A stretch of DNA of 64,000 bases, from the sequence record PQ451753.1; one strand, given 5' to 3'. Shown piece after piece: positions 14,499 to 46,002 of this stretch. The position numbers and the translations under genes are program-made. A model generated the notes under the pieces. That model made no database searches. It was not told the DNA's origin and saw nothing but the letters and a program-made list of their open reading frames with translations. The first letter of the stretch is position 1; each line of letters begins with the position of its first letter.

Positions 14499-14521
14499 AA
14501 GAAAAGGGGTGTTACCACCCC
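14499..14521 (-). terminator. Terminator-like hairpin after the giant tail gene
   Basis: Minus strand GGGGTG-GTAA-CACCCC then TTTTCTT. Confidence 0.55.
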
Positions 14522-17500
14522 TATGTGCGCTGACGTGCCATACTGATTGGCCCACGGTCATGCGTGATGGTTTGCGCCATACGCTGACGCTCCTGTTGGT
14601 GTGCACGTGATCGTTGTTCAGCTTCTCTACTTGAACCATTGAAACCAACTTTCTCGTTCAACTGACGTAGTGACATCGCCATCTCTTCTAGGAAGGATAG
14701 TTGTTTCTCCATCAGTGTACGCGATTTCTCATTCTCTTCGACGCTGTGTTTCGCCATTGACTCTTTCAAGTCTGACAGTTCACGTTCTTTGCTAGAGATA
14801 CGCGCATCGAGTTCTTGACGAACCTGATCAACGTACTTGTTAGCATCGAAATCTGGAGTCTGAGTCTCCATCTCTTTCACGCTTGTCTTAACCACTTCCG
14901 ATATAGCTGGAGTAGGGACAGCACTTGAACCAATGGAGGTTGGTGCAGCTTCTACAGCAGTGCGCTGCGTTACTGCCTTTTCAATGTCCTTAGTCGCTTT
15001 CACCTTAGCAATTTGAGTACGACCTTCATCAGTACCCACTACGTTTGGTGTTGCTTCTTTCACACTCTTGGCATCATCGTTAGCTGCTGCCATCGGTGCT
15101 TGTTTAAGGACAGGGTTTGAAGCATACTTAGATACGTATGAGAATCGGTTCTCAGCACGACGTTGTAGCTTCTCGTGGATTGCACGATAACTTAACAAAC
15201 GTCCCTTATCAGTAAATACTCCAGGGTTAGATGCCGCAGGTTGCATAAAGTCTTCTGCTGCAATGCGGTCAGGTGTTTTATATAAGTTACGTAAGAACTT
15301 AGATGCACCACCCGGACCTAAGAAGTGTGCTAAGTACAAATCAGCAGGACCAGCTTTAACGCCGTCAGGCATCGCTTTCTCCACTGTCTTAGCGCCAGAA
15401 CGTAAATACTCCGCACCCAAGAGTGCGTTCGCTACCGGATCGAATGGTCCCGCTGTTGCTGGAATACCATACTTGTTAGCGTGTTTCTTCAGCTCTGCTT
15501 TCCATGTACCGTTGATGAACTGGAACAGACCTTTCGCAGATGAAGTAGACGCACCCGCTTGCGGGTTCATTGACGACTCCATCATAGCTACAGTCAATAA
15601 CAAGTTCTCATCAACACCACTGGCTTTTGACACTTCCTTAATCATGTTGGCGACTGACTCTTTATCATTACCACGCAGACGAATCTTAGCGTAAGCACTG
15701 TTAGGGTCAACACCCTCACCCATTTCACCGATTGGAATACCGCCTGCGTCAGGTCGGTATGTGCCTCCCGCACTGGTAGTTACTGTACCGCTACCGCTAT
15801 CCATTGTCATGGTTGATCCATTACGAACCCTGTCAATAATACTTCTTGACATCTCCGTACCGCTGGATTTTGGTTTTGGCTTAGTAACCTGCTTAACTTC
15901 AGTAGTATCCATACGAATTTCTTCGTCTTGTCCTGCGGTTTGCTCCATCGCTTTAGCACGACGTTGGTTATCGCGGAGATACTGAATGTTACCATCTACG
16001 GACGTCGGGTCACCGTTAAGTGACGAGATATCTTTAAATGGTGACACGTTCACTGACCAGATTGAGACTTCATTGTTCTCAAACATCGTACGTAACCCAA
16101 CAATAGCTAATGCTACGTCAAGCATATATGGTGTAGATGTAGATACCATTGCTTGTAATGGGTCGGCATTTGCTGCGTATTGTTTTAGCGAGATTACATA
16201 ACGCATCAATACTGGGATGAAACGTGATTCAAACCAAGACTTCCACTTAGCACGATGTGCACTATCTTCATAGTTCAACCCAAACTTCGCCATAAAGCGT
16301 TCAGCTATAATGGTTGAGTCTAGATTAATCGTAGCCGACTTGCCTGTTGCACTAATGTGCTTAATCACCGTTTCTTCTAATCCCCACAGCAACTTGACTT
16401 TATCAACTGACAAGTCATGTAAACCGTACGCACGTAAACGGACTGACTCCACCGCATTGAGGTTACTTGGGTCGCGTAGCGAAGTAAAGTCGCCATCAGC
16501 ATTCTGCTTCAAGGCTATTGTACCTGCATTGCCACCTGTTGACTCATCACGACGTCGATATGCATCACGCACCTTACGATACGTTTTCATATCTCTGAAG
16601 TTCTTACCGCCTACAGTTACCGAGCCATCATCGTTCTTCACGACGTTGTCTTTAGATAACTTGTACCACTCAGGGTCAATACCGTCTGCACTATTAGCGT
16701 CAGCACCCTCTACAGTAGCCACCTTACCGGAATTAGACTTCTTGTCTTTCTTAGCGTCTTTCACAAGTTCAGCAATTTCCTCAGCGGATTCTGCCTCTAC
16801 TTCTTTGACAGCCTCACCAGACATCATGTCATCGCCACCGAACCAACCACCAATCGTATCGAACATACCGCGATCACCAAACGGTGAATGCATTACTCGG
16901 AAGATTGGATGGTCAACTGGCAACTTAACACCATCTAGGATTTTAGCCATCGCTTCTGGTTCTACTTTAGAAGTATCATCCAGATTGTTCAACGCTACAC
17001 CCGGTGCCTGCTGTCTTGCACGCGTTGTCCAGAGTAAGAATACAGGAATGAAACGACCATGTACCCAACGTTCAAACATTTCTACAGCTTTTGGTTCATC
17101 AGTGGCTACGCCGAACTGTTTAGCCATTTCCATAGTTGTTTGTTCATCTACCCCTTTCACTGTTGAGATACCCTCATTGTTATATGAGGTATGTTTCAAC
17201 AATGCGTCTTCAAGATAAAGCAGTTTAGCTACTTCGTCAGACTTACCGTCACTGTAGTCCTCTGTACCGTACTGTGCCATGCGTAACTTCATTAGTGGAC
17301 CGTTTACTACACGAGTCGCTAACTTGTACGCACCGTAACCTACAGCCGCAACGGCTGCTGCGGTTAACACTACTGGCGCAGAGATAGTACCAATAGCACC
17401 TAGTGCTGCGGCACCTGCCATTCGAGCACCTTGCCACAATACTTGACGACCGATAAAACTACCTGCTGTAAGTGCACCACGTCCCAATGCTTTAGCACCT

Positions 17501-20500
17501 TTCCATAATCCACCCGCTGCACGTTTTAACAGTCCAGGCTTCTTACCCTTTCCAGGTCCGTCTGGAACATCTGGTGAGCCGCCAAATGGATTAATCTTGT
17601 TAAAGATAGATCCCAGGCCGTCACCTAACATCCCTAGAGCCTTAGTGGCAAAAGAGCCTGCAAGTACACCACCCAGTGAACCCATTACGCCTTTCAGCGC
17701 ACCGCCTAATCCGCCTGCTAGCCAGCTAAAGAATCCTTGACTAGGTTTCTTCTCGCCTTTCGCATCTTTCTTGTTGCGTCTAGCTTCAGCGCGTTCGGCT
17801 TTCTTCTTCTCCCTTGCTTCGCGTCGTTTCTCAAAGATGTCTTTAAAGCTACCATCGCGATCACCATCACCATCAACATCCCCAAAGATTTCTTCAGACT
17901 TGTCTGAGTCAATCGGGTCAAGCACATCCTCCATCTTAGAGTCTTGCTTAGTTAGACGATCATCCAGTAACTGGTAAATCTCATCTAACTTGTCAATGAT
18001 TTTATTGGTTGAACGACGACCAACCTTTTCAGCACCGTCTCCACGAATTTTTCCTAATGCCCAATCTTTAGCAGCACCTAATCGGTCTATTGCACCGCCT
18101 GCTAGGTCTTTAACAAAGTCCTTAGCGGCAACCGCTTTATCCATACCAAAGTTAACCGCAGATTTAATACGCGACCCTACTTTGGACATAAGCGATTCGA
18201 ATGGGTTCCCATCCACATCGACAAATTTAACATCAGGATTATCAAAGTCCTCTTGCGAGATGATAACCTCTTTATGCTTATTGTAAACCGGACCTGTGAT
18301 ATCCGCAGCACTGCGAATCACCTTACCTGTATTACGGTCGATGTAGAAACCACGCAGCATTAACTGATGCTGTAAACGTGGCACACTTTCCCCTTGGACA
18401 TAAATGTCTTTTGAGGTACGTACTTTGTTAATTACTTTCTTACCGAGGTCGGATACTTGACTAAGGATAGCCTGCGGAACACCGAAGGCATTACGTAAGC
18501 CACCACCTGCTAGTCGACCAATACCCTCCGAGAGTTTCTTCCAACCTTTTTGCGTGTAATACGTAAATTGGTCTTTCTTCTCTCGGACTTCTTCTTCAGT
18601 AAGAACCACACCGTTTTTGTCATAAACAGCCCCAGTGATGTCCTTAATCGACTTGATGACTTTTCCGTTTTCATCAAAATACATGCCCGCCTTGAGTTTA
18701 CGACCAAGAAGAACGATGTTGCCATCTTCATCTCGAATGTCTGTAACTCCTTGGAATGAATCAACCATGCTGTTCAGTCCGGCAGCAACCCCTTTGCGTG
18801 CACCGTTTAACTTATCCCATACTGAGAAGTTTGGAAACTTCTCACGCACTTTGGTTAGACGATCACTTATAGCGTCTTTAACGCGACCTGCGCCGCGACG
18901 CACTTTACCTGCACCTGATTTAACGTGTTGACCAAAGCGACCAAAGTAGCCCGGCTTATCAGCAGTTGTTGCTTCTGCATCGCCAGACACATCTACAACA
19001 GGCACACCACGTTCTGACATATCTTGCAGAACTTGTAAGATAGAACCGACTTCTTCACTGAGGTTGTTTGCGACTAACTGGTCGCGAACTTGTTCCACTA
19101 ACCCATCGAGTGTTGAACTAGAATCACCAGACTCTTTGTCTTTAGCGATTTTACGCAACGCCGTCATTAGGTTAGGTTCTTCCTCACCAAAGAGCGCTTC
19201 ACGAACACCACCTGTGATGCCTGTAGCTAGACTGGACATATCGAATCCGCTAGTGCGGTCTAATGCATCAGTTAACTTAGAGTACATCTCAAACTGGATC
19301 TCGTTAGAGAACCATGAGCTATCGCGCAAGTCACTTAAGTCTTCACTACGGATACTTTCAGCAACCGGACGTGCAGAGTTAGAACGAACCGCTTTCTTCA
19401 ACTCCTCCATATCAACATTAGTTGTAGGACGCTGAGCTTCTTGACGGTTCAGTGTATCTGCCAGACCCTTAATGACTTCTTCAATGTTAGAGCCACTGCG
19501 GAGTTCTGGCTTAGGTTGATGTTCAAACTTTGGTGTGTAGTTACTGTACGTACTGGTTAAGTCTCTATTAAGCGTTGAACGACCATTCTCATGTTCGAAG
19601 ATGCCTGACTTAGCCACCATCGTCCCACCGTATAGGTTAGACATTTCATCAACCACATCTTGTATCGGAGCAATCGCGTCACGAAGACGTCTGATTTCAT
19701 CTGATACTTCGACGTTAACACTTTGTTCTGTCTTCTTACCCTCATCACGGATATCTGAGAAGAACTGTTGTAGGTCAAGTAAGTGTTCACTATTACCTAC
19801 CGAACCGTAAGTGTCCATGTTATCTGCAAGGTCAGCTACATTAAAGCGACCTACAGTACGGATCTTCTCATCGATGACTCGACCTAGGTCTTCCTTAGCA
19901 CCATCCGATAGGTCAGCATCTTTAGTCAATTTCTCAACTAACTCGTCAATTCCTTTACGTACATACTCACGCGTTTCCACATCGGCAGCACGTGTTGCAA
20001 TACGTTCTTGAATTTCACTTTCATTAACCAATGACTTAGTTGTCCAGTCATAGGTCTGCTTACCTGTATCTACACCACCTAAGCGGTTAATAGATTGGTC
20101 GATGGTCGCTAACCATTCTGGAATAACTTCATTCAGGGTAATGTCGTTACGTTTTGACCATGGCGATGCTTTAGCTAATGCCTCCGCAGTTACGTTTTCC
20201 ATACGGGCAGTATCGCCCGTATACGACGGTAAAATACTTGACAGCATGTTTGCTGCAATACTTTCAAAACCGCTATTACGTTCTGCATACGCATCTCTTG
20301 CTAAATCATTCAGATACTCTGGCATAGTTGTGCCGTAGTATCTAAGTTTAGAGCCTAGACTTGCAACAGTTTCATTCGCTTCACCTTTCTCACGAAGATA
20401 CTTTTGAATCTTCTGAACTTGAGGGGTGATGTATCGATTGGCAAAAGCAGAGCCTGCCAATTCTGCGCCCGTCTGAGCCATCTGAGCACGCTGTTGTGCA

Positions 20501-21507
20501 GGAGACAACTCTACGCCCTGACCACCGTCATCTTGCATGGCAGCGACTTGAGAACCCATGGAAATGACTTCGCGGGCAGAACTACCAAATTCCTTGATAG
20601 CCTGAACACTGTTGTCACCCAGTTTCGACAGATACTCTCTTGCGAACTTAGCGGGAGTTGAGTTCTCAATAATGGTGCGTTTCATCATTGCTGCTGAGAT
20701 TTCACTAAACTCTTCTTTAGCGTAATCAGGCAATGCCGTGTTCTTAACGATGGCGTCACTGTTTGGGATCAGTTTCTCCATCGCAGTTTGGGTGGTTTGC
20801 AACAAGTCACTCAATACGTAGTACTGACGCCAGTTAACTTCTAACATCTTACGACGGTATTTGTCACTGACTTGGTTGTACGCAACCATATTTGCCGTGT
20901 CACTACGGATACCAGAAATGATTTTATTCAAATCGTCCTGACGAATCGTGTCGGCTTGGTCTTTAATGTCTTGTTGGACTTTATCTTCAGCACGCTCCTG
21001 TTGTGCTAATTCTTGTTGTGCACCAAACGTATCAGTAAGCATCGCTGCGAGAGCATTCTCACGCGGGTCTTCATTACCGTACCCACCAGTGTACTCTTCT
21101 TCACCTTTAGCCCAGTTACCAATTTTCTTGGTCATTGATTCAGGCAGATAACGTTGAAGCATTGGCATAGCTTCACGTGTCGTACGTTGGAGGTCACGCT
21201 TAGTTTGGGTTAATTGTGTTTTGGCTTCCTGATAGACCTTACGACCCTCGGATGCCACGGTATCATATGCTTCCGCTGCAACGGTATAATCGCTAGGTAG
21301 ACTATCGAGTATTAGCTTGCGGCGCTTGGACTTACCGACGATGGTTTCAGCTGCTTTCTTAGCAGCGGTCTTTGGCGCTTGGAGAACCGCTTCGCGACCC
21401 TCAGGCAGAGGAGTCGTACCGGGTTCAAAATCCATGTCCAAATCAAGGTCATCGTCAAGACCCCAATCATCATCTAGATCGATATCTAGATCTTTACTAC
21501 TGCTCAT
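14521..21507 (-). CDS. Giant tail (tape-measure-like) protein with lytic transglycosylase domain (phiKZ gp181-like)
   Basis: About 2330 aa; SLT motifs LLTVAMMESSMNP..A...SSAKGLFQF...TW and YLAHFLGPGGA; start reassigned to ATG 21507 (GGAG RBS) because the track start runs into the opposite gene. Confidence 0.85.
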   Translation of the reverse strand: MSSSKDLDIDLDDDWGLDDDLDLDMDFEPGTTPLPEGREAVLQAPKTAAKKAAETIVGKSKRRKLILDSLPSDYTVAAEAYDTVASEGRKVYQEAKTQLTQTKRDLQRTTREAMPMLQRYLPESMTKKIGNWAKGEEEYTGGYGNEDPRENALAAMLTDTFGAQQELAQQERAEDKVQQDIKDQADTIRQDDLNKIISGIRSDTANMVAYNQVSDKYRRKMLEVNWRQYYVLSDLLQTTQTAMEKLIPNSDAIVKNTALPDYAKEEFSEISAAMMKRTIIENSTPAKFAREYLSKLGDNSVQAIKEFGSSAREVISMGSQVAAMQDDGGQGVELSPAQQRAQMAQTGAELAGSAFANRYITPQVQKIQKYLREKGEANETVASLGSKLRYYGTTMPEYLNDLARDAYAERNSGFESIAANMLSSILPSYTGDTARMENVTAEALAKASPWSKRNDITLNEVIPEWLATIDQSINRLGGVDTGKQTYDWTTKSLVNESEIQERIATRAADVETREYVRKGIDELVEKLTKDADLSDGAKEDLGRVIDEKIRTVGRFNVADLADNMDTYGSVGNSEHLLDLQQFFSDIRDEGKKTEQSVNVEVSDEIRRLRDAIAPIQDVVDEMSNLYGGTMVAKSGIFEHENGRSTLNRDLTSTYSNYTPKFEHQPKPELRSGSNIEEVIKGLADTLNRQEAQRPTTNVDMEELKKAVRSNSARPVAESIRSEDLSDLRDSSWFSNEIQFEMYSKLTDALDRTSGFDMSSLATGITGGVREALFGEEEPNLMTALRKIAKDKESGDSSSTLDGLVEQVRDQLVANNLSEEVGSILQVLQDMSERGVPVVDVSGDAEATTADKPGYFGRFGQHVKSGAGKVRRGAGRVKDAISDRLTKVREKFPNFSVWDKLNGARKGVAAGLNSMVDSFQGVTDIRDEDGNIVLLGRKLKAGMYFDENGKVIKSIKDITGAVYDKNGVVLTEEEVREKKDQFTYYTQKGWKKLSEGIGRLAGGGLRNAFGVPQAILSQVSDLGKKVINKVRTSKDIYVQGESVPRLQHQLMLRGFYIDRNTGKVIRSAADITGPVYNKHKEVIISQEDFDNPDVKFVDVDGNPFESLMSKVGSRIKSAVNFGMDKAVAAKDFVKDLAGGAIDRLGAAKDWALGKIRGDGAEKVGRRSTNKIIDKLDEIYQLLDDRLTKQDSKMEDVLDPIDSDKSEEIFGDVDGDGDRDGSFKDIFEKRREAREKKKAERAEARRNKKDAKGEKKPSQGFFSWLAGGLGGALKGVMGSLGGVLAGSFATKALGMLGDGLGSIFNKINPFGGSPDVPDGPGKGKKPGLLKRAAGGLWKGAKALGRGALTAGSFIGRQVLWQGARMAGAAALGAIGTISAPVVLTAAAVAAVGYGAYKLATRVVNGPLMKLRMAQYGTEDYSDGKSDEVAKLLYLEDALLKHTSYNNEGISTVKGVDEQTTMEMAKQFGVATDEPKAVEMFERWVHGRFIPVFLLWTTRARQQAPGVALNNLDDTSKVEPEAMAKILDGVKLPVDHPIFRVMHSPFGDRGMFDTIGGWFGGDDMMSGEAVKEVEAESAEEIAELVKDAKKDKKSNSGKVATVEGADANSADGIDPEWYKLSKDNVVKNDDGSVTVGGKNFRDMKTYRKVRDAYRRRDESTGGNAGTIALKQNADGDFTSLRDPSNLNAVESVRLRAYGLHDLSVDKVKLLWGLEETVIKHISATGKSATINLDSTIIAERFMAKFGLNYEDSAHRAKWKSWFESRFIPVLMRYVISLKQYAANADPLQAMVSTSTPYMLDVALAIVGLRTMFENNEVSIWSVNVSPFKDISSLNGDPTSVDGNIQYLRDNQRRAKAMEQTAGQDEEIRMDTTEVKQVTKPKPKSSGTEMSRSIIDRVRNGSTMTMDSGSGTVTTSAGGTYRPDAGGIPIGEMGEGVDPNSAYAKIRLRGNDKESVANMIKEVSKASGVDENLLLTVAMMESSMNPQAGASTSSAKGLFQFINGTWKAELKKHANKYGIPATAGPFDPVANALLGAEYLRSGAKTVEKAMPDGVKAGPADLYLAHFLGPGGASKFLRNLYKTPDRIAAEDFMQPAASNPGVFTDKGRLLSYRAIHEKLQRRAENRFSYVSKYASNPVLKQAPMAAANDDAKSVKEATPNVVGTDEGRTQIAKVKATKDIEKAVTQRTAVEAAPTSIGSSAVPTPAISEVVKTSVKEMETQTPDFDANKYVDQVRQELDARISSKERELSDLKESMAKHSVEENEKSRTLMEKQLSFLEEMAMSLRQLNEKVGFNGSSREAEQRSRAHQQERQRMAQTITHDRGPISMARQRT

Positions 21508-31661: not shown

Positions 31662-32193
31662 GCTAGTGGAACTGTTGGAATTTTATATTGACTTCGATGG
31701 ATTGGGGACTAATTGGCAGGACTATGTACTCAAAACACATTTTCCTGAGTTTAAAAACATTGAGGAGTTGAATCAACATCCTCACCGTACTGAACTTATT
31801 CGCAGTATGTATGAGCGAGAACCAAATCTGTTCCGTAATCTACCGCCGTTAATGAAGTACCAACAGTTGTTAAGTCTTTTGACTGAACATAATGTACGTT
31901 GGAATATCTTAACCGCTGTCGGTTCAGACCATCCGTGCTACCAAACTGCACGTGAGGATAAACTACATTACATTCAACATCACTTTGGTGTTGAGAGTAA
32001 TAAAGTGATCGTCTCACAAACTTCTGAAGACAAGTACCTTTACGCAAGGAAGGGAGCTGTGCTTGTCGACGACTTCAGAAGAAACTGTCGTGAATGGGAA
32101 GAGGCTGGAGGTACTGCTATCTTCGTAGAAGCGAATGTCTATTCAATTGACGATTTAATCAAACGTGTAACTAACTTAATTCACAATGCGTAA
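31651..32193 (+). CDS. HAD-family 5'(3')-deoxyribonucleotidase-like (NT5C) phosphatase
   Basis: FYIDFDG motif I; VLVDDFRRNCREWEEAGGTAI motif; start uncertain. Confidence 0.75.
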   Translation: MRVKLVELLEFYIDFDGLGTNWQDYVLKTHFPEFKNIEELNQHPHRTELIRSMYEREPNLFRNLPPLMKYQQLLSLLTEHNVRWNILTAVGSDHPCYQTAREDKLHYIQHHFGVESNKVIVSQTSEDKYLYARKGAVLVDDFRRNCREWEEAGGTAIFVEANVYSIDDLIKRVTNLIHNA

Positions 32194-32208
32194 CGATATG
32201 TATCAAAG

Positions 32209-32247
32209 GAGCTAGCGCATCAGCGCTAGTTCTTTTATTTGTTTTTT
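32209..32247 (+). terminator. Intrinsic terminator
   Basis: GAGCTAGCGC-ATCA-GCGCTAGTTC followed by a long T-rich tail. Confidence 0.8.
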
Positions 32248-32295: not shown

Positions 32296-32682
32296 ATGTT
32301 CAAGCCGAAAATAGATAAGGCTTCTGTCATTCACCTGAAAGATAGTCAGCTGACATTTGGTAAGGAAAACCGAACATCACGTTGGTGGGTTCGTTATGAG
32401 GGTCTAGAACAGCCTGTATGGTGTTCTGTTGAACAGAAACAGTTAATTGGACTCATTGTACAGCTAACGACTTTAAATGGCTTACGCGCGCTTAGACGCA
32501 ATGTTAGTCCGCATGAAAGATATCGTAAAGAAATCGTCGAAGGGTTGAATCATGAAATCAATGCATGTACTCGACACATTAACCGTTTGGTATCTATCAC
32601 GGACAATCGAATGGATCATAAAGTGAAGTTCATATTCGACTCCACTGAGAACATCACCACATTAGACGGATGGGCAGCCTAG
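32296..32682 (+). CDS. Hypothetical protein
   Basis: 128 aa with AAGGAG RBS. Confidence 0.65.
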   Translation: MFKPKIDKASVIHLKDSQLTFGKENRTSRWWVRYEGLEQPVWCSVEQKQLIGLIVQLTTLNGLRALRRNVSPHERYRKEIVEGLNHEINACTRHINRLVSITDNRMDHKVKFIFDSTENITTLDGWAA

Positions 32683-32698
32683 CCCCATCCCAAGATTC

Positions 32699-32721
32699 TT
32701 CAGGTATATTTCATTGAAGTG
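32699..32721 (+). promoter_or_regulatory. Putative phage (early) promoter motif, copy 1
   Basis: TTCAGGTATATTTCATTGAAGTG; near-identical motif at 45945, 50238 and 58064. Confidence 0.6.
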
Positions 32722-32817
32722 AAGAACTGCTATAAAAATACATGGCAGTATATTGTTTGCTGAGAAGAATCAGTAGAACTCACGTTAACGTTAAAACATC
32801 ATAAAGGAAAAACTACA

Positions 32818-33255
32818 ATGGCTAAACTAAATGAACAAGCACAAGCAATCTTTGACCGTCTTGGTGAAGTTTCTTTCGACAGCAATCACGTACCATCAGT
32901 AGGTACTCCAAACGCTGTAACTGAAACTATGAAAGAGAAGGCGAAGGTTACTGACGAACAGCTTGACATTCTAGCTAGCGTAATCACTGACGGCTCTGCT
33001 GCGGTTACTGCTAAACTTGGTGACCCAATGATTCGTCGCATTCAAGAAAACGAAGATTTGGCAAATCTAGATTTCGACCTTGACACTCCTATCGTTCAAC
33101 TTGGCCTAAGCGTATCACGCCCAAGCAAAGAAGACGGTAAAGAAATCACACGTGAACAATATCGTGCAAACATTGGTGCGCGTGTTACTGTACGCGGCCT
33201 TGACTCAACTAACGAAGTTGCGGACGAACTCGCTAGCATGTGGGAAGGCTTGTAA
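32818..33255 (+). CDS. Hypothetical protein, probably highly expressed
   Basis: 145 aa; AAAGGAA RBS; strongly biased codon use; follows the promoter motif. Confidence 0.75.
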   Translation: MAKLNEQAQAIFDRLGEVSFDSNHVPSVGTPNAVTETMKEKAKVTDEQLDILASVITDGSAAVTAKLGDPMIRRIQENEDLANLDFDLDTPIVQLGLSVSRPSKEDGKEITREQYRANIGARVTVRGLDSTNEVADELASMWEGL

Positions 33256-33321
33256 GTAGCACAACCTGACGGTAGGTAACCCCTACCGTCAACCTATTCC
33301 TTTTTATTTGGAGATACTAAA

Positions 33322-33600
33322 ATGGCAGAAACAAACGTAGGCGTTTCAGTAGACGTGGCATTCCTAGTCCTAACGCTGGTAATGACTGAGAAGTCAATGG
33401 GTGAACGTGACGACACCATGCGCTCGGATATCGTTGATGATATTCAAGAAGAACTTCAATGCGATGAAGAGACTGCAAAAGAAAAATTCAATGAAGTACA
33501 CGAACGTGCAGTAAGTTCACTAAATGAGTTTAGCGACATCTTTGAAGGTGACGTTGACTTTAACGAAATCGGTGAAGAGGACGAAGACGATGCCGAGTAA
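33322..33600 (+). CDS. Small very acidic protein
   Basis: 92 aa, D/E-rich, GGAG RBS. Confidence 0.7.
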   Translation: MAETNVGVSVDVAFLVLTLVMTEKSMGERDDTMRSDIVDDIQEELQCDEETAKEKFNEVHERAVSSLNEFSDIFEGDVDFNEIGEEDEDDAE

Positions 33601-33880
33601 AGATATTGCATTTCTACGCACTACTCAGATTGCGAAAGAAGATGTCTATCGTAAAATTCCTGCTGAGAAAAAAGGTGAGAAGGCGACTGAAGAACTGGTC
33701 TGCTACAAAGGTGAGCCTAATCCTGAAACTTCGGTTTACACAGGTCCTTGGATTCGTAAAGATTTGAAGAAGTGGATTGACCACGCTTACGATACGAATG
33801 GTGACTACAACACCGAATGGTTATTGGTTGAAGAAGACGATCTCCCTGAAGATTTTGTCGACACCAATATCCTTCAGTAA
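33590..33880 (+). CDS. Hypothetical protein
   Basis: ATG 33590 (MPSKD) overlaps the previous stop; GAGG RBS. Confidence 0.65.
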   Translation: MPSKDIAFLRTTQIAKEDVYRKIPAEKKGEKATEELVCYKGEPNPETSVYTGPWIRKDLKKWIDHAYDTNGDYNTEWLLVEEDDLPEDFVDTNILQ

Positions 33881-33894
33881 TCAATTCTAAAATC

Positions 33895-33921
33895 GAGGTG
33901 GCTTAGGCTACCTCTTTTTTT
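33895..33921 (+). terminator. Intrinsic terminator
   Basis: GAGGTGGC-TTAG-GCTACCTC followed by T7. Confidence 0.8.
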
Positions 33922-33934
33922 GTGGGAGTTCAGT

Positions 33935-34153
33935 ATGTCTGAATACAAAAAGGTTTCAACAACAAACACACGTTACATCAATGGTCAATACGGTGCGGCT
34001 GTTGTAGGTGAACAACGTAGTCCTGAAATGATGGAGCTTCTAAGAAAGGTCGGTAAGTCGAAGCCAAACCTTAAATCAAACGAGTCGCTATTCAGCGATG
34101 GGTTTATTATTATCAAACGGGAGAAGATCGATGGAAACGAAAATGATTGCTAA
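33935..34153 (+). CDS. Small GQYG-motif protein 1
   Basis: RYINGQYGAAVV; GGGAG RBS before ATG 33935. Confidence 0.7.
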   Translation: MSEYKKVSTTNTRYINGQYGAAVVGEQRSPEMMELLRKVGKSKPNLKSNESLFSDGFIIIKREKIDGNENDC

Positions 34154-34334
34154 TGCCGTAATTACTAAATACAGCGGTGGGCAGTATGGCGCAAGTGTTA
34201 TTTCAGACCAACCCCTCACCAATGAAGAACTTGAAGAGTATCGTAAGTCTGCACAGTACGGTAATGGTCGAAAGGTAACTAGCGCATACTACGAATCTAA
34301 CGAGGTGGTTATCGAAGGTAAGTCCTATGAGTAA
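34131..34334 (+). CDS. Small GQYG-motif protein 2
   Basis: KYSGGQYGASVI; GGGAG RBS before ATG 34131. Confidence 0.7.
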   Translation: METKMIANAVITKYSGGQYGASVISDQPLTNEELEEYRKSAQYGNGRKVTSAYYESNEVVIEGKSYE

Positions 34335-34351
34335 ATTAGTAGGAGTGAGGT

Positions 34352-34564
34352 ATGGATGTAAAAAACTTCGGGGCGCGTAGAACGGCCACTAGGTTTATGG
34401 GTGGTCAGTACGGGGCGGCGATTTCTTCTAAGAAGCCATATACTGAAAGTCAAATGAACGACTTGCGTAACTCTGTCACACGTCGTGACGGAAAGCTTTT
34501 ACTATCGTCGATTTATCTGATGTCTGAAAAATCTGTAACTTTGATGGCGGTATCAAATGGGTAA
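34352..34564 (+). CDS. Small GQYG-motif protein 3
   Basis: RFMGGQYGAAIS; GAGG/AGGAG RBS. Confidence 0.7.
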   Translation: MDVKNFGARRTATRFMGGQYGAAISSKKPYTESQMNDLRNSVTRRDGKLLLSSIYLMSEKSVTLMAVSNG

Positions 34565-34757
34565 TGAAAAAGCACCAATCGAGAAGTCCTTGGATGAAGG
34601 CTACAAATATGCAGGTAAGGTAATCAAGGGCAACGGACAGTATGGTCTTGCAGTAGTAACGCGTGATAAACCACTGTCGAAAGAGTTCATAGATGAGACA
34701 CGTGAAGAAGTGATCTCCAAAACTCAGCCCATTAACTATGAGTTTGGACGTTTCTAA
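34557..34757 (+). CDS. Small GQYG-motif protein 4
   Basis: IKGNGQYGLAVV; start overlaps the previous stop. Confidence 0.7.
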   Translation: MGNEKAPIEKSLDEGYKYAGKVIKGNGQYGLAVVTRDKPLSKEFIDETREEVISKTQPINYEFGRF

Positions 34758-34769
34758 AAGTGGTATCTC

Positions 34770-34979
34770 ATGAATCTACTCGGAAGTACAAAGGTGATGG
34801 CAATATACGTCAAACACCGCAGTGGTCAGACTGGCATAGCCATCTGTTCCAAAGTTCCTACTGGTGACGCTGGTAAGGATGAAATCAAAAAAGCAAGAGC
34901 TATTCTCGGTCGCGAGTTGAAAGGTAAGCGTGGTGACAAACACGTTGAATTCAACTACGGGACTTGGAATGGCAGTTGA
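34770..34979 (+). CDS. Small GQYG-like protein 5
   Basis: KHRSGQTGIAIC variant motif. Confidence 0.65.
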   Translation: MNLLGSTKVMAIYVKHRSGQTGIAICSKVPTGDAGKDEIKKARAILGRELKGKRGDKHVEFNYGTWNGS

Positions 34980-34982
34980 CAC

Positions 34983-35029
34983 AAAAAAGACGAGAGTGGC
35001 TTACGCCACCCTCGCTCTTTATTTTTTTT
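34983..35029. terminator. Bidirectional intrinsic terminator
   Basis: CGAG.GTGGC-TTAC-GCCAC.CTCG with A-tract and T-tract, between convergent genes. Confidence 0.8.
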
Positions 35030-35031
35030 GT

Positions 35032-35880
35032 TTAGACTTGCTCAGACGCAGCTGCATCAGCGTAGTCGTGGTAACCAACCTTAGTTGCTTCCACGTCAGC
35101 ATCGATTTCAGATGCGAACGACTTACGAGTCATTGGGTTCAGACCAGAACGGTTTAGACGGTCAAGGTCTTCTTGTGCAAACAGCTTAACGCCGTAAGAA
35201 CATTGTTGTAGAGAAGTGAAGCCGATGCCCATCTCTACAGTTTCACCCGGAGCTTCAAGGTCTTTACGACCATCGTCAGGACCATTCAAACGTGGAGCCA
35301 TGTTGGTACATAGCCATGCGTTTTGAACGTAACGGTGAAGCGGGTCTGGCTCGTAGTACAGTACCGTAGCACAGTACAAGTCAGGAAGAGCATCACCAAC
35401 TTCTTCACTTAGTAGTGAAACAAGTGGTACCTGAGCAGCAGGGTCTTGCATACCGTAACGTAGCCAGAAATCTAGCAGCGTCTTGTACACTTGGCCGTAC
35501 TTATCAGTCACAGTGTGAGTGATTTCAGATTGCTCTTCAGAAACCTTAGTCAGGTCGAACTGGCGGTGGCCAGCTGCACCGATTGCAGTTTCTGCGAATT
35601 CAGCAGTAAGCGCTTTGTTCAAGCCATCCACTTTAGAGTGAACTTCGAAGAACGTTTTGATAGCGCGACGGAAGACATCTGGAGCTTCCATGTACTGAAC
35701 CCAACGAGGAAATTCAATAACGCGTACGATAACATTACGTTTAACGTAGTGAGCGTTCTGAATGTATTTCCCTTGGTTAACAAGCGGACCCATTTGTCCG
35801 CCTTCCAGTGCATTAACCATCGGGGCTGTTGAGTGGACGGCAAAGTTGCCATCCATCATGCGGTCTTTCAAATCAGCCAT
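35032..35880 (-). CDS. Tail tube protein (phiKZ gp30-like)
   Basis: 282 aa directly downstream of the sheath gene; size and synteny. Confidence 0.75.
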   Translation of the reverse strand: MADLKDRMMDGNFAVHSTAPMVNALEGGQMGPLVNQGKYIQNAHYVKRNVIVRVIEFPRWVQYMEAPDVFRRAIKTFFEVHSKVDGLNKALTAEFAETAIGAAGHRQFDLTKVSEEQSEITHTVTDKYGQVYKTLLDFWLRYGMQDPAAQVPLVSLLSEEVGDALPDLYCATVLYYEPDPLHRYVQNAWLCTNMAPRLNGPDDGRKDLEAPGETVEMGIGFTSLQQCSYGVKLFAQEDLDRLNRSGLNPMTRKSFASEIDADVEATKVGYHDYADAAASEQV

Positions 35881-35884
35881 TTAA

Positions 35885-37927
35885 TTAGCCCTCTTGGAAA
35901 CGGTGTGCCACGATAGTAGTCTTGAAGACAGTCTTCATTACTGCACCGTAGACGTGGATCTTGATCGAGATAGAGTTGCCGTTTGCCTTATCTTCCGCAG
36001 AGAAGTACGGTTCAAAGTCTAGGTTAACAACACCATCGTAACGACCTTCGGTCTTGATGATAAGCTTGTCACGAACCATCTTAGCGATTTGGCTATCGGT
36101 CATGTCGGACACGCCAGACATTTCCGCCCATACCTGCTCAGATAGGTACTCAAGGTTACCAATGATTGGTGCGATCAACCAGTTGTTCAAGATAGAACGG
36201 TCTTCGTCGTACACTGTGTACAGTGCCGGGAAGTGGTAACGCCATTGGTCAAATGAACGCAAGCTGATCAAACCTGCTTCCCAATCAGATACGTAAACTG
36301 GGAATGGCTTGTAATCCAAGTTGAAGTCGAAGCCTTCAGTGATTACAGTTAGTTCACCGCGAGAGAACTTGTTACGTGACAAGAACTTGCCTTGAGACGA
36401 ACCAGCGTACTTAGAGAACTTAGATGCAAGTGAGTAAGACACAGGCACACGCTCTTTGTATTGGCTGTTGTTCAAGTACATGCTGTGACCAACCAAGTGA
36501 CCACGCATACACGCAGTACCGTACTTGGTAGACTCAGGAAGCGCACGCAACATCGCTGATAGAGCAATCTTCATTGCTTCTTCAGTTTGCATTGTGTTAA
36601 TGCCTTGGTCATATACGTGAGTACATAGAACCAAGTTGGTGTTCTTCATGCGACCGATGTAGTTGGTCAGTGCTTCTTTGGTATCGGTTGAGAAACCAGA
36701 ATCCCATAGGAAGCTTGATGGGTACTTCAGTAGGTTTAGGTAGTTAACCGTACCTTCACCGAAGTTGATCATCTCTTTACGGACTAGAGCATCGAATGTA
36801 TCGTTGGTCATAGTACCGTCAGAACCGCCGAGTAGGTAATGAGTGTGTGAGTCAGTTAAGATCTCGCCACCTTCAGTGCCGTCATCAACGTGCAGACCAT
36901 TATATGGATTACCATACAGGTCTAGACCGGAGAAGATATCCACCATGTAAGGGTTTGTTAGCGTATCGTCATCCTTGATGAAGCTTTGTGCCTTAGTAAG
37001 CACTAGCTCAAGGTTGCTACGGTACACGTACATATCCTGAACTGGACCAAGTTGTGGGATGTAACCCGGATCAGGGTTCATATCGCGGTAAGCCGCAAGT
37101 GCCACATCTTCGAAATCTAACTCAGTACGCATTGGACGGTAGTACGCTTCTGGTTTGAACGAGAAGAATACTGAAGTCTGGCCATTCACTGTACGAGTGA
37201 TTGACGGCGACATACCCGGAACTGTTTGGTCTACAAATTGTAGAGTCAGTAGACGACCGCCTACTTCCATAGCGTAGTCAGCTGGAACTGGAGTCATAGA
37301 CTTCTCGTTACCACAAGACAGACGCAGACCGAAGTCATTTGGTTTCGCACCAGGGTATGGCGCAGGCATATCCAAGATTGGGTAAATCTTAGACTTAGTG
37401 CCAGCAGCGTTAGTCAATGTACCATCAAAGATGTTACCTTGCTTGAACTGTCCAGCTTCGTCAGAGAACTTACCGAAGTGCCATGCGATTAGCAGGCCAT
37501 CGATTTGTCCTTTAACTTTTGGTGCACCGTTTTCGTACAACACAGAACCGTCTGCGTTACGCTCATAGTCAGGAACCTTAGTTTCTAACACTTCAGCGTA
37601 CAGACGTAGAGATGCTGTTGCAGCATCATCTGGAACCAGACGTTGAACCATGATTTCATTCGCATTGCGGTTGAATAGTTCAAGGTAAGGTGTGTTGAAA
37701 GTTGTGTACTTGTTCTTAAGTCCAACGACTTCGTCACCGTACATAGCTTTCAGATTGTCCCCAGAAACAACATAAGCGTTGTTAGGGTCACCCTTCGGGC
37801 TGAATGTAAACATCAGCGGAAGGTGAATAGGAACCCCTGCTTGTGTAAGTACTTTTTCTGGTACTGACTGATCGTCCGTACCGTACTTCACGTTCTGAGG
37901 AGTACCATTCTTGATGATTTCAGACAT
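35885..37927 (-). CDS. Contractile tail sheath protein (phiKZ gp29-like)
   Basis: 680 aa; PIHLPL...F..KG N-terminus, YP.SFLWDSGFS..TK motif; divergent from the terminase block as in phiKZ-like phages. Confidence 0.85.
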   Translation of the reverse strand: MSEIIKNGTPQNVKYGTDDQSVPEKVLTQAGVPIHLPLMFTFSPKGDPNNAYVVSGDNLKAMYGDEVVGLKNKYTTFNTPYLELFNRNANEIMVQRLVPDDAATASLRLYAEVLETKVPDYERNADGSVLYENGAPKVKGQIDGLLIAWHFGKFSDEAGQFKQGNIFDGTLTNAAGTKSKIYPILDMPAPYPGAKPNDFGLRLSCGNEKSMTPVPADYAMEVGGRLLTLQFVDQTVPGMSPSITRTVNGQTSVFFSFKPEAYYRPMRTELDFEDVALAAYRDMNPDPGYIPQLGPVQDMYVYRSNLELVLTKAQSFIKDDDTLTNPYMVDIFSGLDLYGNPYNGLHVDDGTEGGEILTDSHTHYLLGGSDGTMTNDTFDALVRKEMINFGEGTVNYLNLLKYPSSFLWDSGFSTDTKEALTNYIGRMKNTNLVLCTHVYDQGINTMQTEEAMKIALSAMLRALPESTKYGTACMRGHLVGHSMYLNNSQYKERVPVSYSLASKFSKYAGSSQGKFLSRNKFSRGELTVITEGFDFNLDYKPFPVYVSDWEAGLISLRSFDQWRYHFPALYTVYDEDRSILNNWLIAPIIGNLEYLSEQVWAEMSGVSDMTDSQIAKMVRDKLIIKTEGRYDGVVNLDFEPYFSAEDKANGNSISIKIHVYGAVMKTVFKTTIVAHRFQEG

Positions 37928-38018
37928 GGGTAGTCTCCTGTCTACTGATAAAAAATTACGACATCACGTCATATGTATTTACTTAAACTTCAATACTTAT
38001 ACTCAGAGGATAACCACA

Positions 38019-38915
38019 ATGAGTCTACAAACTGCTTATGATGCAAAAATCATTAAGGGATTTCCGGTGTCTGAGATTAAACTCAACATCGAAAAAGCGT
38101 CCCTAAGTGACAAATGCCATGAAGCCACAAACTCGGTTTCATACGTCACTGAAGCTCAGGACGTTCCTCCTTTCCCGTATCCGATTTACGACATAGAGTC
38201 CAATAAAGCATTTGTTGACTCTCGTCCATATAGTTCACTAGAACGTGACGGAAGTATTAAAATCCGAAACATGCTAGATGAAAAATTAAATCTACTACTG
38301 GCGAAGTTGGAAATTTCATGGGTGCAAAACGATCGTCCAGACAGCGCACAACGCGCTTTCGCGATGTCGTCTGAAGTCATGGTTCGTTGGTTGACCAACA
38401 TCATCTCCCACAAATATGGGCTTGCACCTTACCAAAAGTCCCGACTAACCGCCTTAGCAGCAATGTTTTCGGTCGGACAATTTTATAACAACATTGAAGA
38501 TTTGCTCACGGTAGAACGTCATCTTCAAAGTATTTCCCGTAACTTCCCAGTTCACCACGATACTGTAAAAGAAGTGGCAGAGCGAGTAGAAAATCATTTC
38601 CCTCGTGATGTGGAAGAATTCATTGAAGCGATGAACAAAATGGATCTAGGTCCACGTCTTCGTAACTTTAATACCAAAGAACTGTACAACGCACTTAATG
38701 GTTCTTGGTGGGCAAATGCTAACGCACCAACCTTTGTTGCTATCGCTTTGGAATACCCACCTGCGATGGCAGTGCTTGTGCAAATGGCAATTGAAAACAC
38801 GATGTACAAACGTACGCAAATCGGTTCAGTCGTTTATGACATGAATCGTGGCAGTAACTTTGCTAACCACACTCGTGCAATCAGCCTGTTTATTGATCAA
38901 TTCAATCAGGAGTAA
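38019..38915 (+). CDS. Virion structural protein (phiKZ gp28-like)
   Basis: GAGGA RBS before ATG 38019; synteny between sheath and terminase. Confidence 0.65.
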   Translation: MSLQTAYDAKIIKGFPVSEIKLNIEKASLSDKCHEATNSVSYVTEAQDVPPFPYPIYDIESNKAFVDSRPYSSLERDGSIKIRNMLDEKLNLLLAKLEISWVQNDRPDSAQRAFAMSSEVMVRWLTNIISHKYGLAPYQKSRLTALAAMFSVGQFYNNIEDLLTVERHLQSISRNFPVHHDTVKEVAERVENHFPRDVEEFIEAMNKMDLGPRLRNFNTKELYNALNGSWWANANAPTFVAIALEYPPAMAVLVQMAIENTMYKRTQIGSVVYDMNRGSNFANHTRAISLFIDQFNQE

Positions 38916-45924: not shown

Positions 45925-45944
45925 GTTTCCAGAATAAAAATTTA

Positions 45945-45967
45945 TTCAGATATATATCATCTAAGTG
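45945..45967 (+). promoter_or_regulatory. Putative phage (early) promoter motif, copy 2
   Basis: TTCAGATATATATCATCTAAGTG at the head of an accessory operon, right after a terminator. Confidence 0.6.
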
Positions 45968-46002
45968 GACAATCAATCAAAAACCTTTAATGGGAGATAA
46001 TC

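Follow-up and report, generated by a model that had tools for sequence, protein, structure and literature searches.

A lineage-specific family of small proteins encoded by a five-gene array beside the tail tube gene of Vibrio jumbo phage pVp-JHP1101

What is the nature of five very small genes that stand in a row beside the tail genes of a jumbo phage, and do they belong together? The question is raised by an array of five co-oriented plus strand genes (positions 33935–34979; pVpJHP1101_184–188, all 'hypothetical protein' in GenBank) in a stretch of 64,000 nucleotides (nt) of sequence record PQ451753.1, the whole of which is referred to here as the window; window coordinates are those of the record minus 124,000. 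Positions 33500–35100 are 100% identical to Vibrio phage pVp-JHP1101 (PQ451753.1, 230,423 bp, host V. parahaemolyticus) and 82.6% identical, across 61% of their length, to Vibrio phage pVa-21, previously reported as a distant phiKZ-like phage (PMC6472347). pVp-JHP1101 is itself phiKZ-like, with genes for a multisubunit RNA polymerase, a phiKZ-type sheath, a gp28-like vertex-binding protein and an annotated nuclear shell protein. The original prediction, made from the letters of the window alone, was of five consecutive small open reading frames (ORFs) sharing a GQ(Y/T)G motif, conserved at the protein level, flanked by terminators and forming a self-contained, diversifying family of β-hairpin/helix proteins such as might be expected of a panel of anti-defence inhibitors or a hetero-oligomer. 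No publication dealing with the motif, the family or pVp-JHP1101 was found in a literature search. From the comparisons described below the five genes appear to constitute one lineage-specific, undescribed protein family.

The five ORFs lie where they had been placed, each with GQ(Y/T)G about 13–27 residues from its start, and the codon strings quoted for the motif proved exact. In the 256,222 residues of all six-frame ORFs of at least 25 amino acids (aa) from the whole 230-kb genome GQ[YFTS]G occurs five times, and all five occurrences (5/5) are in the array. A hidden Markov model (HMM) of the family, searched against all six-frame ORFs of the genome, matched nothing outside the array, so that the family is indeed self-contained; the next best score (E = 0.23, not significant) was that of a 2,328-aa annotated lytic transglycosylase at 14521–21507 on the minus strand. 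Apart from one pair of 12-mers there are no DNA repeats within the array and the copies have no DNA similarity, and because of this their resemblance is at the protein level, as had been claimed. Paralogy was assessed with HMMs built from the orthologues of one copy alone and searched against the 988 six-frame ORFs of the window. Among copies 1–4, ten of the 12 ordered pairs gave E values between 2e-8 and 6e-3; the model of the copy 3 group found copy 4 weakly (E 0.22) and in the reverse direction the copy 4 model found copy 3 with E 0.003. Paralogy of copies 1–4 is statistically supported. Copy 5 gave E 0.04–0.6 with the models of copies 2–4 and was not matched by the copy 1 model among the same ORFs, and when its profile was aligned by hhalign with the profile of the remaining types the result was P = 0.004 across 24 hairpin columns. 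Its family membership is borderline and rests on the motif and hairpin, its size and its place in the array. Over 41 distinct members the motif columns are G in 41, Q in 41, Y or F in 32 (S or T in the other nine, all of the D type to which copy 5 belongs) and G in 41, and an A or S stands two residues after GQxG in 41/41; copy 5 has T or S where the other copies have Y. A helix arginine is invariant in 17/17 of the non-D members aligned. All five window proteins combine a length of 60–80 aa, GQxG, A/S two residues further on and location at the array site.

Small size is the one property that would be expected of chance reading frames with a coincidental motif, and nothing else speaks for this explanation. 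It is excluded by the confinement of all five genomic motif occurrences to the array, by the significant HMM matches of the copies to one another and by frames that are intact in orthologues from more than 20 samples with ratios of non-synonymous to synonymous substitution rates (dN/dS) of 0.08–0.42, and we put its probability at practically nil. The dN/dS values come from orthologue pairs among the window, pVa-21 and metagenomic relatives (copy 1, 0.08–0.42 with close orthologues; copy 2, 0.21; copy 3, 0.11; copy 4, 0.13–0.22; copy 5, 0.13–0.17), and since the orthologues are under purifying selection the array ORFs are genuine genes. The description of the family as diversifying is not borne out in the dN/dS sense, as every orthologue pair is under purifying selection and it is the gene content that varies instead. 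Between the window and pVa-21 the dN of the array is 0.09–0.11 as against 0.018 for the adjacent tail tube gene (about 5–6 times) and the dS is 0.48–0.70 as against 0.18. The elevation of both fits an exchange of array segments among diverged phages rather than positive selection.

How widely is the family distributed? Profile searches of 5.8 billion clustered proteins gave about 30 clusters of 60–80 aa, none with a Pfam domain or an informative name, and the family HMM searched against 1.84 billion representatives gave 12 true family representatives, all of 60–80 aa, and did not match random small proteins. A profile of the D type alone retrieved orthologues and nothing beyond, and no relative was found when IMG/VR was scanned with the D-type alignment. 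A metagenomic protein of 493 aa (P0020) has about six tandem repeats of ~60 residues in which the helix segment alone matched the family profile (E 1.6e-7 summed over six stretches); it was judged to be a spurious relative, the match being taken as compositional or as a helix-cap coincidence. All contigs fetched, from more than 20 sequencing samples and including a TARA Oceans scaffold and a 225.7-kb NCBI assembly, have the array at the same site, in the order Peptidase_S80 protease, small genes, a gene of 95–97 aa, array, then convergent tail tube (PF23806) and sheath genes. After these, the closest phages in culture are Erwinia phage Phobos and Cronobacter phage CR5 (Derbicusvirus relatives, tail tube ~45% identical); both keep the protease-to-tube synteny and lack the array, with two unrelated larger genes in its place. 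The family is found only in pVa-21-like Vibrio jumbo phages, and there always at one site, with a 96-aa gene on one side and the 3' end of the tail tube gene on the other. In pVa-21 the homologues (pVa21_177, 178, 179 and one unannotated ORF) occupy the same slot with the same subfamily order as in the window, copy 4 being 84–85% identical to pVa21_178 and copy 5 86% identical to its counterpart; pVa-21 differs in having four copies, none of B type, and an X type that is missing from the window. The annotated homologues are labelled 'hypothetical protein' and so are uninformative on function. As an intact 65-aa X-type ORF lies in the unannotated gap between pVa21_176 and pVa21_177 (L002 5436–5633; KY499642.1 ~161741–161938), the copies in pVa-21 number four and not the three annotated.

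Clustering of 41 distinct full-length members gave the subfamilies X, A (copy 1), B1 (copy 2), B2 (copy 3), B3, C (copy 4) and D (copy 5), with identities of 53–97% within subfamilies and 22–36% between them; at 22–36% identity and without DNA similarity the subfamilies are old. About ten related arrays at the same site, from pVa-21 and marine metagenomes, were compared (Table 1). The subfamily order X-A-B-C-D is constant; no complete array lacks A, D or a C-type module, whereas X and B vary. Phages whose array content differs have tail tubes that are 93–98% identical. In L003/L005 a single deletion has left no more of the B1 copy than a short ORF from its N-terminal end, in an otherwise intact array. 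The B/C chimera of L007/L009 is an intact gene, the N-terminal part of which is 71% identical to the B type (33% to C') and the C-terminal part 88% identical to C' (20% to B), with the switch in similarity at the conserved motif. Gain, loss, duplication and chimeras are all seen in this comparison of copy number across relatives, and turnover proceeds by gain, loss, duplication and recombination of copies with each subfamily under purifying selection. The hairpin and leader upstream of the array are identical in the window and pVa-21 (L012 has a variant stem) though the first gene is of A type in the former and X type in the latter, and for this reason the array is a cassette region behind a constant leader, in which A, D and the C-type module are always retained. 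Unrelated genes of 129 aa and 145 aa have been inserted just before the array, after the 97-aa gene, in some relatives (L020 2801–3190, L021 1340–1729 and L028 3539–3976), which makes this junction an insertion hotspot; the 129-aa and 145-aa genes (L020, L028) match no Pfam or PHROG family.

Table 1. Features of the array locus in the window, and subfamily composition of the array in the window and its relatives.
Feature	Position	Strand	Description
Upstream terminator-like hairpin	33895–33914	+	8 pairs then T7; Shine–Dalgarno sequence and copy 1 start codon directly after
Copy 1	33935–34153	+	subfamily A, 72 aa, pVpJHP1101_184
Copy 2	34131–34334	+	subfamily B1, 67 aa, pVpJHP1101_185; 23-nt overlap with copy 1
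Copy 3	34352–34564	+	subfamily B2, 70 aa, pVpJHP1101_186; basic, net charge ~+5.5
Copy 4	34557–34757	+	subfamily C, 66 aa, pVpJHP1101_187; 8-nt overlap with copy 3
Copy 5	34770–34979	+	subfamily D, 69 aa from ATG 34770, pVpJHP1101_188; strongly basic, ~+7
Downstream terminator-like hairpin	34990–35015	.	scored on minus strand, T-runs on both strands; common to array (+) and tail tube gene (−)
Window array			A-B1-B2-C-D
L004 array			A-B1-C-D; otherwise near-identical to window, without copy 3 type
L003/L005 array			A-(truncated B1)-B2-C-D
pVa-21, L017–19 array			X-A-C-D
L006, L014–16, L028–30 array			A-B3-C-D
L012/13 array			A-B-C-C'-D; one C type with TTG start
L007/L009 array			X-A-(B/C chimera)-D
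L020/21 array			X-A-B3, then contig end

Within the array the genes overlap by 23 nt and 8 nt or are separated by gaps of 17 nt and 12 nt, and each is preceded by a Shine–Dalgarno-like sequence or overlaps the preceding gene (for copy 2, GGGAG lies 9 nt upstream of the ATG at 34131). Hairpins of the terminator type were found on both sides, as had been predicted, and the pVa-21 equivalent of the downstream one scores on both strands; the array is one operon-like unit of five close-packed genes between terminator hairpins. As the upstream hairpin ends ~20 nt before the first start codon there is no room for a sigma-70-type promoter, and a scan for sigma-70 promoters gave no more sites than were found in shuffles. 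A conserved AT-rich motif of ~35 nt with the core ATATATATCAT stands upstream of plus strand genes at about a dozen sites in PQ451753.1 (one in the window, at ~45930–45990, and about eleven further ones) and is probably one promoter class of pVp-JHP1101, presumably resembling the early promoters of phiKZ. In a whole-genome scan no site of this promoter-like motif was close to the array. It is possible that the array is transcribed by read-through from the small genes upstream, or from a short promoter of a phage polymerase. The GenBank coding sequences agree with the ORFs of copies 1–4, and copy 5 is annotated from 34794 (61 aa) instead of 34770. The longer ORF of copy 5 has eight more N-terminal residues, and as every D-type relative conserves them the true protein is probably the longer one. 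Copy 4 has an N-terminal extension and a conserved C-terminal end. All members are hydrophilic and without a membrane segment, the five window proteins being soluble, and the charges of members range from about −4 to +8 between subfamilies, D, X and B2 being basic (+5 to +8), B1 and C mildly acidic and A near neutral; this spread suggests that the subfamilies have different binding partners.

AlphaFold2 gave a strand–strand–helix–strand–strand (β-β-α-β-β) model for copy 1 (16 sequences; predicted local distance difference test score, pLDDT, 56) and, for copy 2 (23 sequences; pLDDT 71, predicted template modelling score, pTM, 0.55), strands at 9–15 and 18–24, a helix at 31–42 and strands at 47–56 and 62–66. 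The turn consists, in each model, of the first G of the motif and the residue preceding it, and strand 2 begins with Q-Y-G. In the alignments the hairpin and helix are the shared core and the C-terminal parts are subfamily-specific; the X type matches profile positions 1–52 only and several D types only to about position 44–52. The β-hairpin/helix character originally proposed is thereby supported for copies 1 and 2, the two of the five that were folded, and we infer that copies 3–5 would have the same fold. That the family was not recognised in the first place is in keeping with the searches. Scans of the five proteins and 22 members against Pfam, PHROGs and PADLOC gave only scattered sub-threshold matches of single members, a PDB profile search gave nothing relevant (only two designed proteins, E > 0.2), and Foldseek searches with the copy 1 and copy 2 models found no match at E ≤ 0.001 in the PDB (best E 0.48; template modelling score, TM, ≤0.44, the best-TM matches, at 0.44, being a synapsin subdomain and EsaG) and no relative in BFVD (best E 0.29).

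Some known folds and proteins nevertheless deserve comparison. The swapped-hairpin domains of AbrB, MazE and SpoVT are similar in size, β-β-α-β-β order and a glycine-containing first hairpin; their fold is defined by a homodimeric interleaved eight-stranded barrel. Among 22 members there was no Pfam match to an AbrB/MazE-type or other DNA-binding family at E values up to 10, and no AbrB/MazE/SpoVT structure was in the top 50 Foldseek PDB matches of either monomer model (pLDDT 56 and 71), so identity with AbrB/MazE, unsupported by Pfam, PDB-sequence or Foldseek comparison, was dropped. Dmd of phages T4 and RB69, a small antitoxin-like inhibitor of the RnlA/LsoA toxins, is likewise a small phage protein (57–64 residues in solved chains) with a sheet and a helix and is in the Foldseek lists of both models, but the matches are not significant (E 2.0–2.8, TM 0.26–0.30, probability ~0.1 or lower) and there is no sequence similarity. 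The same order of β-β-α-β-β elements is found in the B1 domains of proteins G and L, in beta-grasp proteins and in Top7-type sandwiches, and designed Top7/Foldit proteins are among the weak Foldseek matches (TM 0.44 or lower); the protein L B1 domain was matched in Pfam by one of 22 members (E 0.077, far below the curated cut-off). Nothing indicates a shared ancestry with such sandwiches. Membership of any described family is not established and the nearest analogies, with anti-defence gene clusters and small inhibitors such as Dmd, would be functional or organisational, without demonstrated homology.

What, then, might such proteins do? The reading that we tentatively favour is that the array encodes small non-structural proteins that form a panel of binders serving host takeover or counter-defence. 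With the common hairpin–helix scaffold each subfamily would bind a macromolecular target of its own, in the host or at the phage–host interface, the array as a whole would act as a panel of binders or inhibitors in takeover or counter-defence, and duplication, together with recombination at the conserved motif, would give rise to new specificities. This is consistent with a real coding family that is lineage-restricted and non-core, with turnover of accessory type, a natural chimera, faster evolution than that of the neighbours, a setting at the end of a run of orphan small genes, and hydrophilic proteins of varied charge. It should be noted that several observations weigh on the other side. 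Since A, D and a C-type module occur in every complete array and in fixed order, they resemble a set that is required rather than accessory genes that can be dispensed with. No sequence or fold match to a known anti-defence or inhibitor protein was found in Pfam, PHROGs, the PDB or by Foldseek against the PDB and BFVD, no dedicated anti-defence library having been searched. No helix-turn-helix (HTH) regulator is linked to the array, as it and the four genes upstream are without a Pfam domain and the gene downstream is that for the tail tube. Counter-defence genes are usually expressed early, and early expression is not indicated here because the AT-rich promoter-like motif is absent upstream and the hairpin lies ~20 nt before the start. 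There is also no sign of recent foreign origin, since the GC content of the array equals that of the genome (43.3% vs 43.0%). Anti-CRISPR and anti-defence clusters resemble the array in that very small genes follow one another in a slot that varies, and close relatives differ in what it contains. Such clusters usually combine unrelated families with a linked HTH (aca-type) regulator, whereas the array consists of a single family without a linked HTH gene, has three subfamily modules that are never lost, and encodes proteins without a sequence or fold match to any solved inhibitor. A narrower form of the binder proposal, which we hold to be unlikely as it stands, is that the proteins are a new fold family of modular inhibitors of nucleus-forming Vibrio jumbo phages, in which a constant scaffold would carry C-terminal modules, each neutralising a different cytoplasmic host immune or RNA-targeting factor, with specificities generated by recombination at the motif as in the B/C chimera.

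The main alternative, which would also explain the fixed order and the constant presence of A, D and a C-type module, is that the paralogues are subunits of one hetero-oligomer in which A, C and D would be obligate, X and B would be exchangeable or extra, and the hairpin face would provide the interfaces. Co-expression is favoured by overlapping or abutting genes in one terminator-bounded unit, the charges are complementary (basic D, X and B2 vs mildly acidic B1 and C), and invariant small residues (G, A/S) alternate on strand 2 as for a tight sheet–sheet or sheet–helix contact, a contact that we infer. However, near-identical phages differ in whether they have X and B types, one lineage has replaced separate B-type and C-type genes by the B/C chimera, and the C-terminal halves are very different between subfamilies, and on balance a hetero-oligomer is possible but doubtful. 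The arrangement of β-β-α-β-β in ~65 residues, an order known from swapped-hairpin domains, together with the net charge of +5 to +8 of D, X and B2 and the helix arginine invariant in 17 non-D members, would suit small nucleic-acid-binding regulators, for example dimeric proteins of the AbrB/MazE/SpoVT kind, that tune phage or host transcription or translation; the neutral to acidic A, B1 and C types and the lack of a match to any DNA-binding family in Pfam, of a PDB sequence match and of an AbrB/MazE/SpoVT structure in the top 50 Foldseek results make this improbable. Least attractive of these functional proposals, and in our view very improbable, is a role as minor virion or tail-assembly proteins, which is suggested by the adjoining tail tube and sheath genes and by the absence of the early-type promoter motif upstream. 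Transcription of the array runs towards the tube and sheath genes and not together with theirs, and a terminator lies between; relatives with homologous tube and sheath proteins lack the family; copy number varies among phages with 93–98% identical tube proteins; and no member matches a virion protein family in PHROGs or Pfam, whereas the neighbours do (PF23806, PF20961, PF25614). The pVa-21 and pVa-22 papers contain no virion proteome.

In kind, although undescribed, the family is a familiar one, a lineage-specific array of small paralogues in an accessory slot of a large phage. Small genes without known relatives abound in large phages, and most are never examined; this array is unusually tractable, being a compact family with a sharp invariant motif, a fixed order and natural variants that include presence and absence, a duplicate, a truncated copy and an intact chimera, in effect a natural domain-swap series. 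If the proteins are host-factor binders they would add a new scaffold to the takeover and counter-defence proteins of nucleus-forming phages, the cytoplasmic host interactions of which are poorly known; if they are a hetero-oligomer, one lineage of phages would have a small, new complex of its own. At present they are a well-documented orphan family and not a demonstrated new mechanism.

The surroundings of the array agree roughly with its original placement between head and tail modules, as a homologue of the head-maturation protease lies ~3.4 kb upstream in the window, and at matching positions in related loci, and on the downstream side the tail tube and sheath genes run towards the array. 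The neighbour at 35032–35880 on the minus strand, annotated as 'putative virion structural protein', is the tail tube protein (PF23806, E 3.5e-86); the sheath neighbour matches PF20961, and the 'hypothetical protein' after the sheath gene (37914–38915, plus strand) is a phiKZ gp28-like vertex-binding protein (PF25614, E 1.3e-77). Nine consecutive small genes (pVpJHP1101_180–188, 32296–34979) have no Pfam or PHROG family, the array being the end of this run, and hairpins stand directly before the next ribosome-binding site at 32205–32236, 32726–32749, ~33268–33290 and 33895–33914. Rfam and tRNA scans of the window found nothing. The gene at 31666–32193, labelled 'putative DNA repair exonuclease', matches phrog_2643, a 5'-3' deoxyribonucleotidase (E 4e-22), and its relatives have a weak Pfam match to NT5C; the label is probably wrong.

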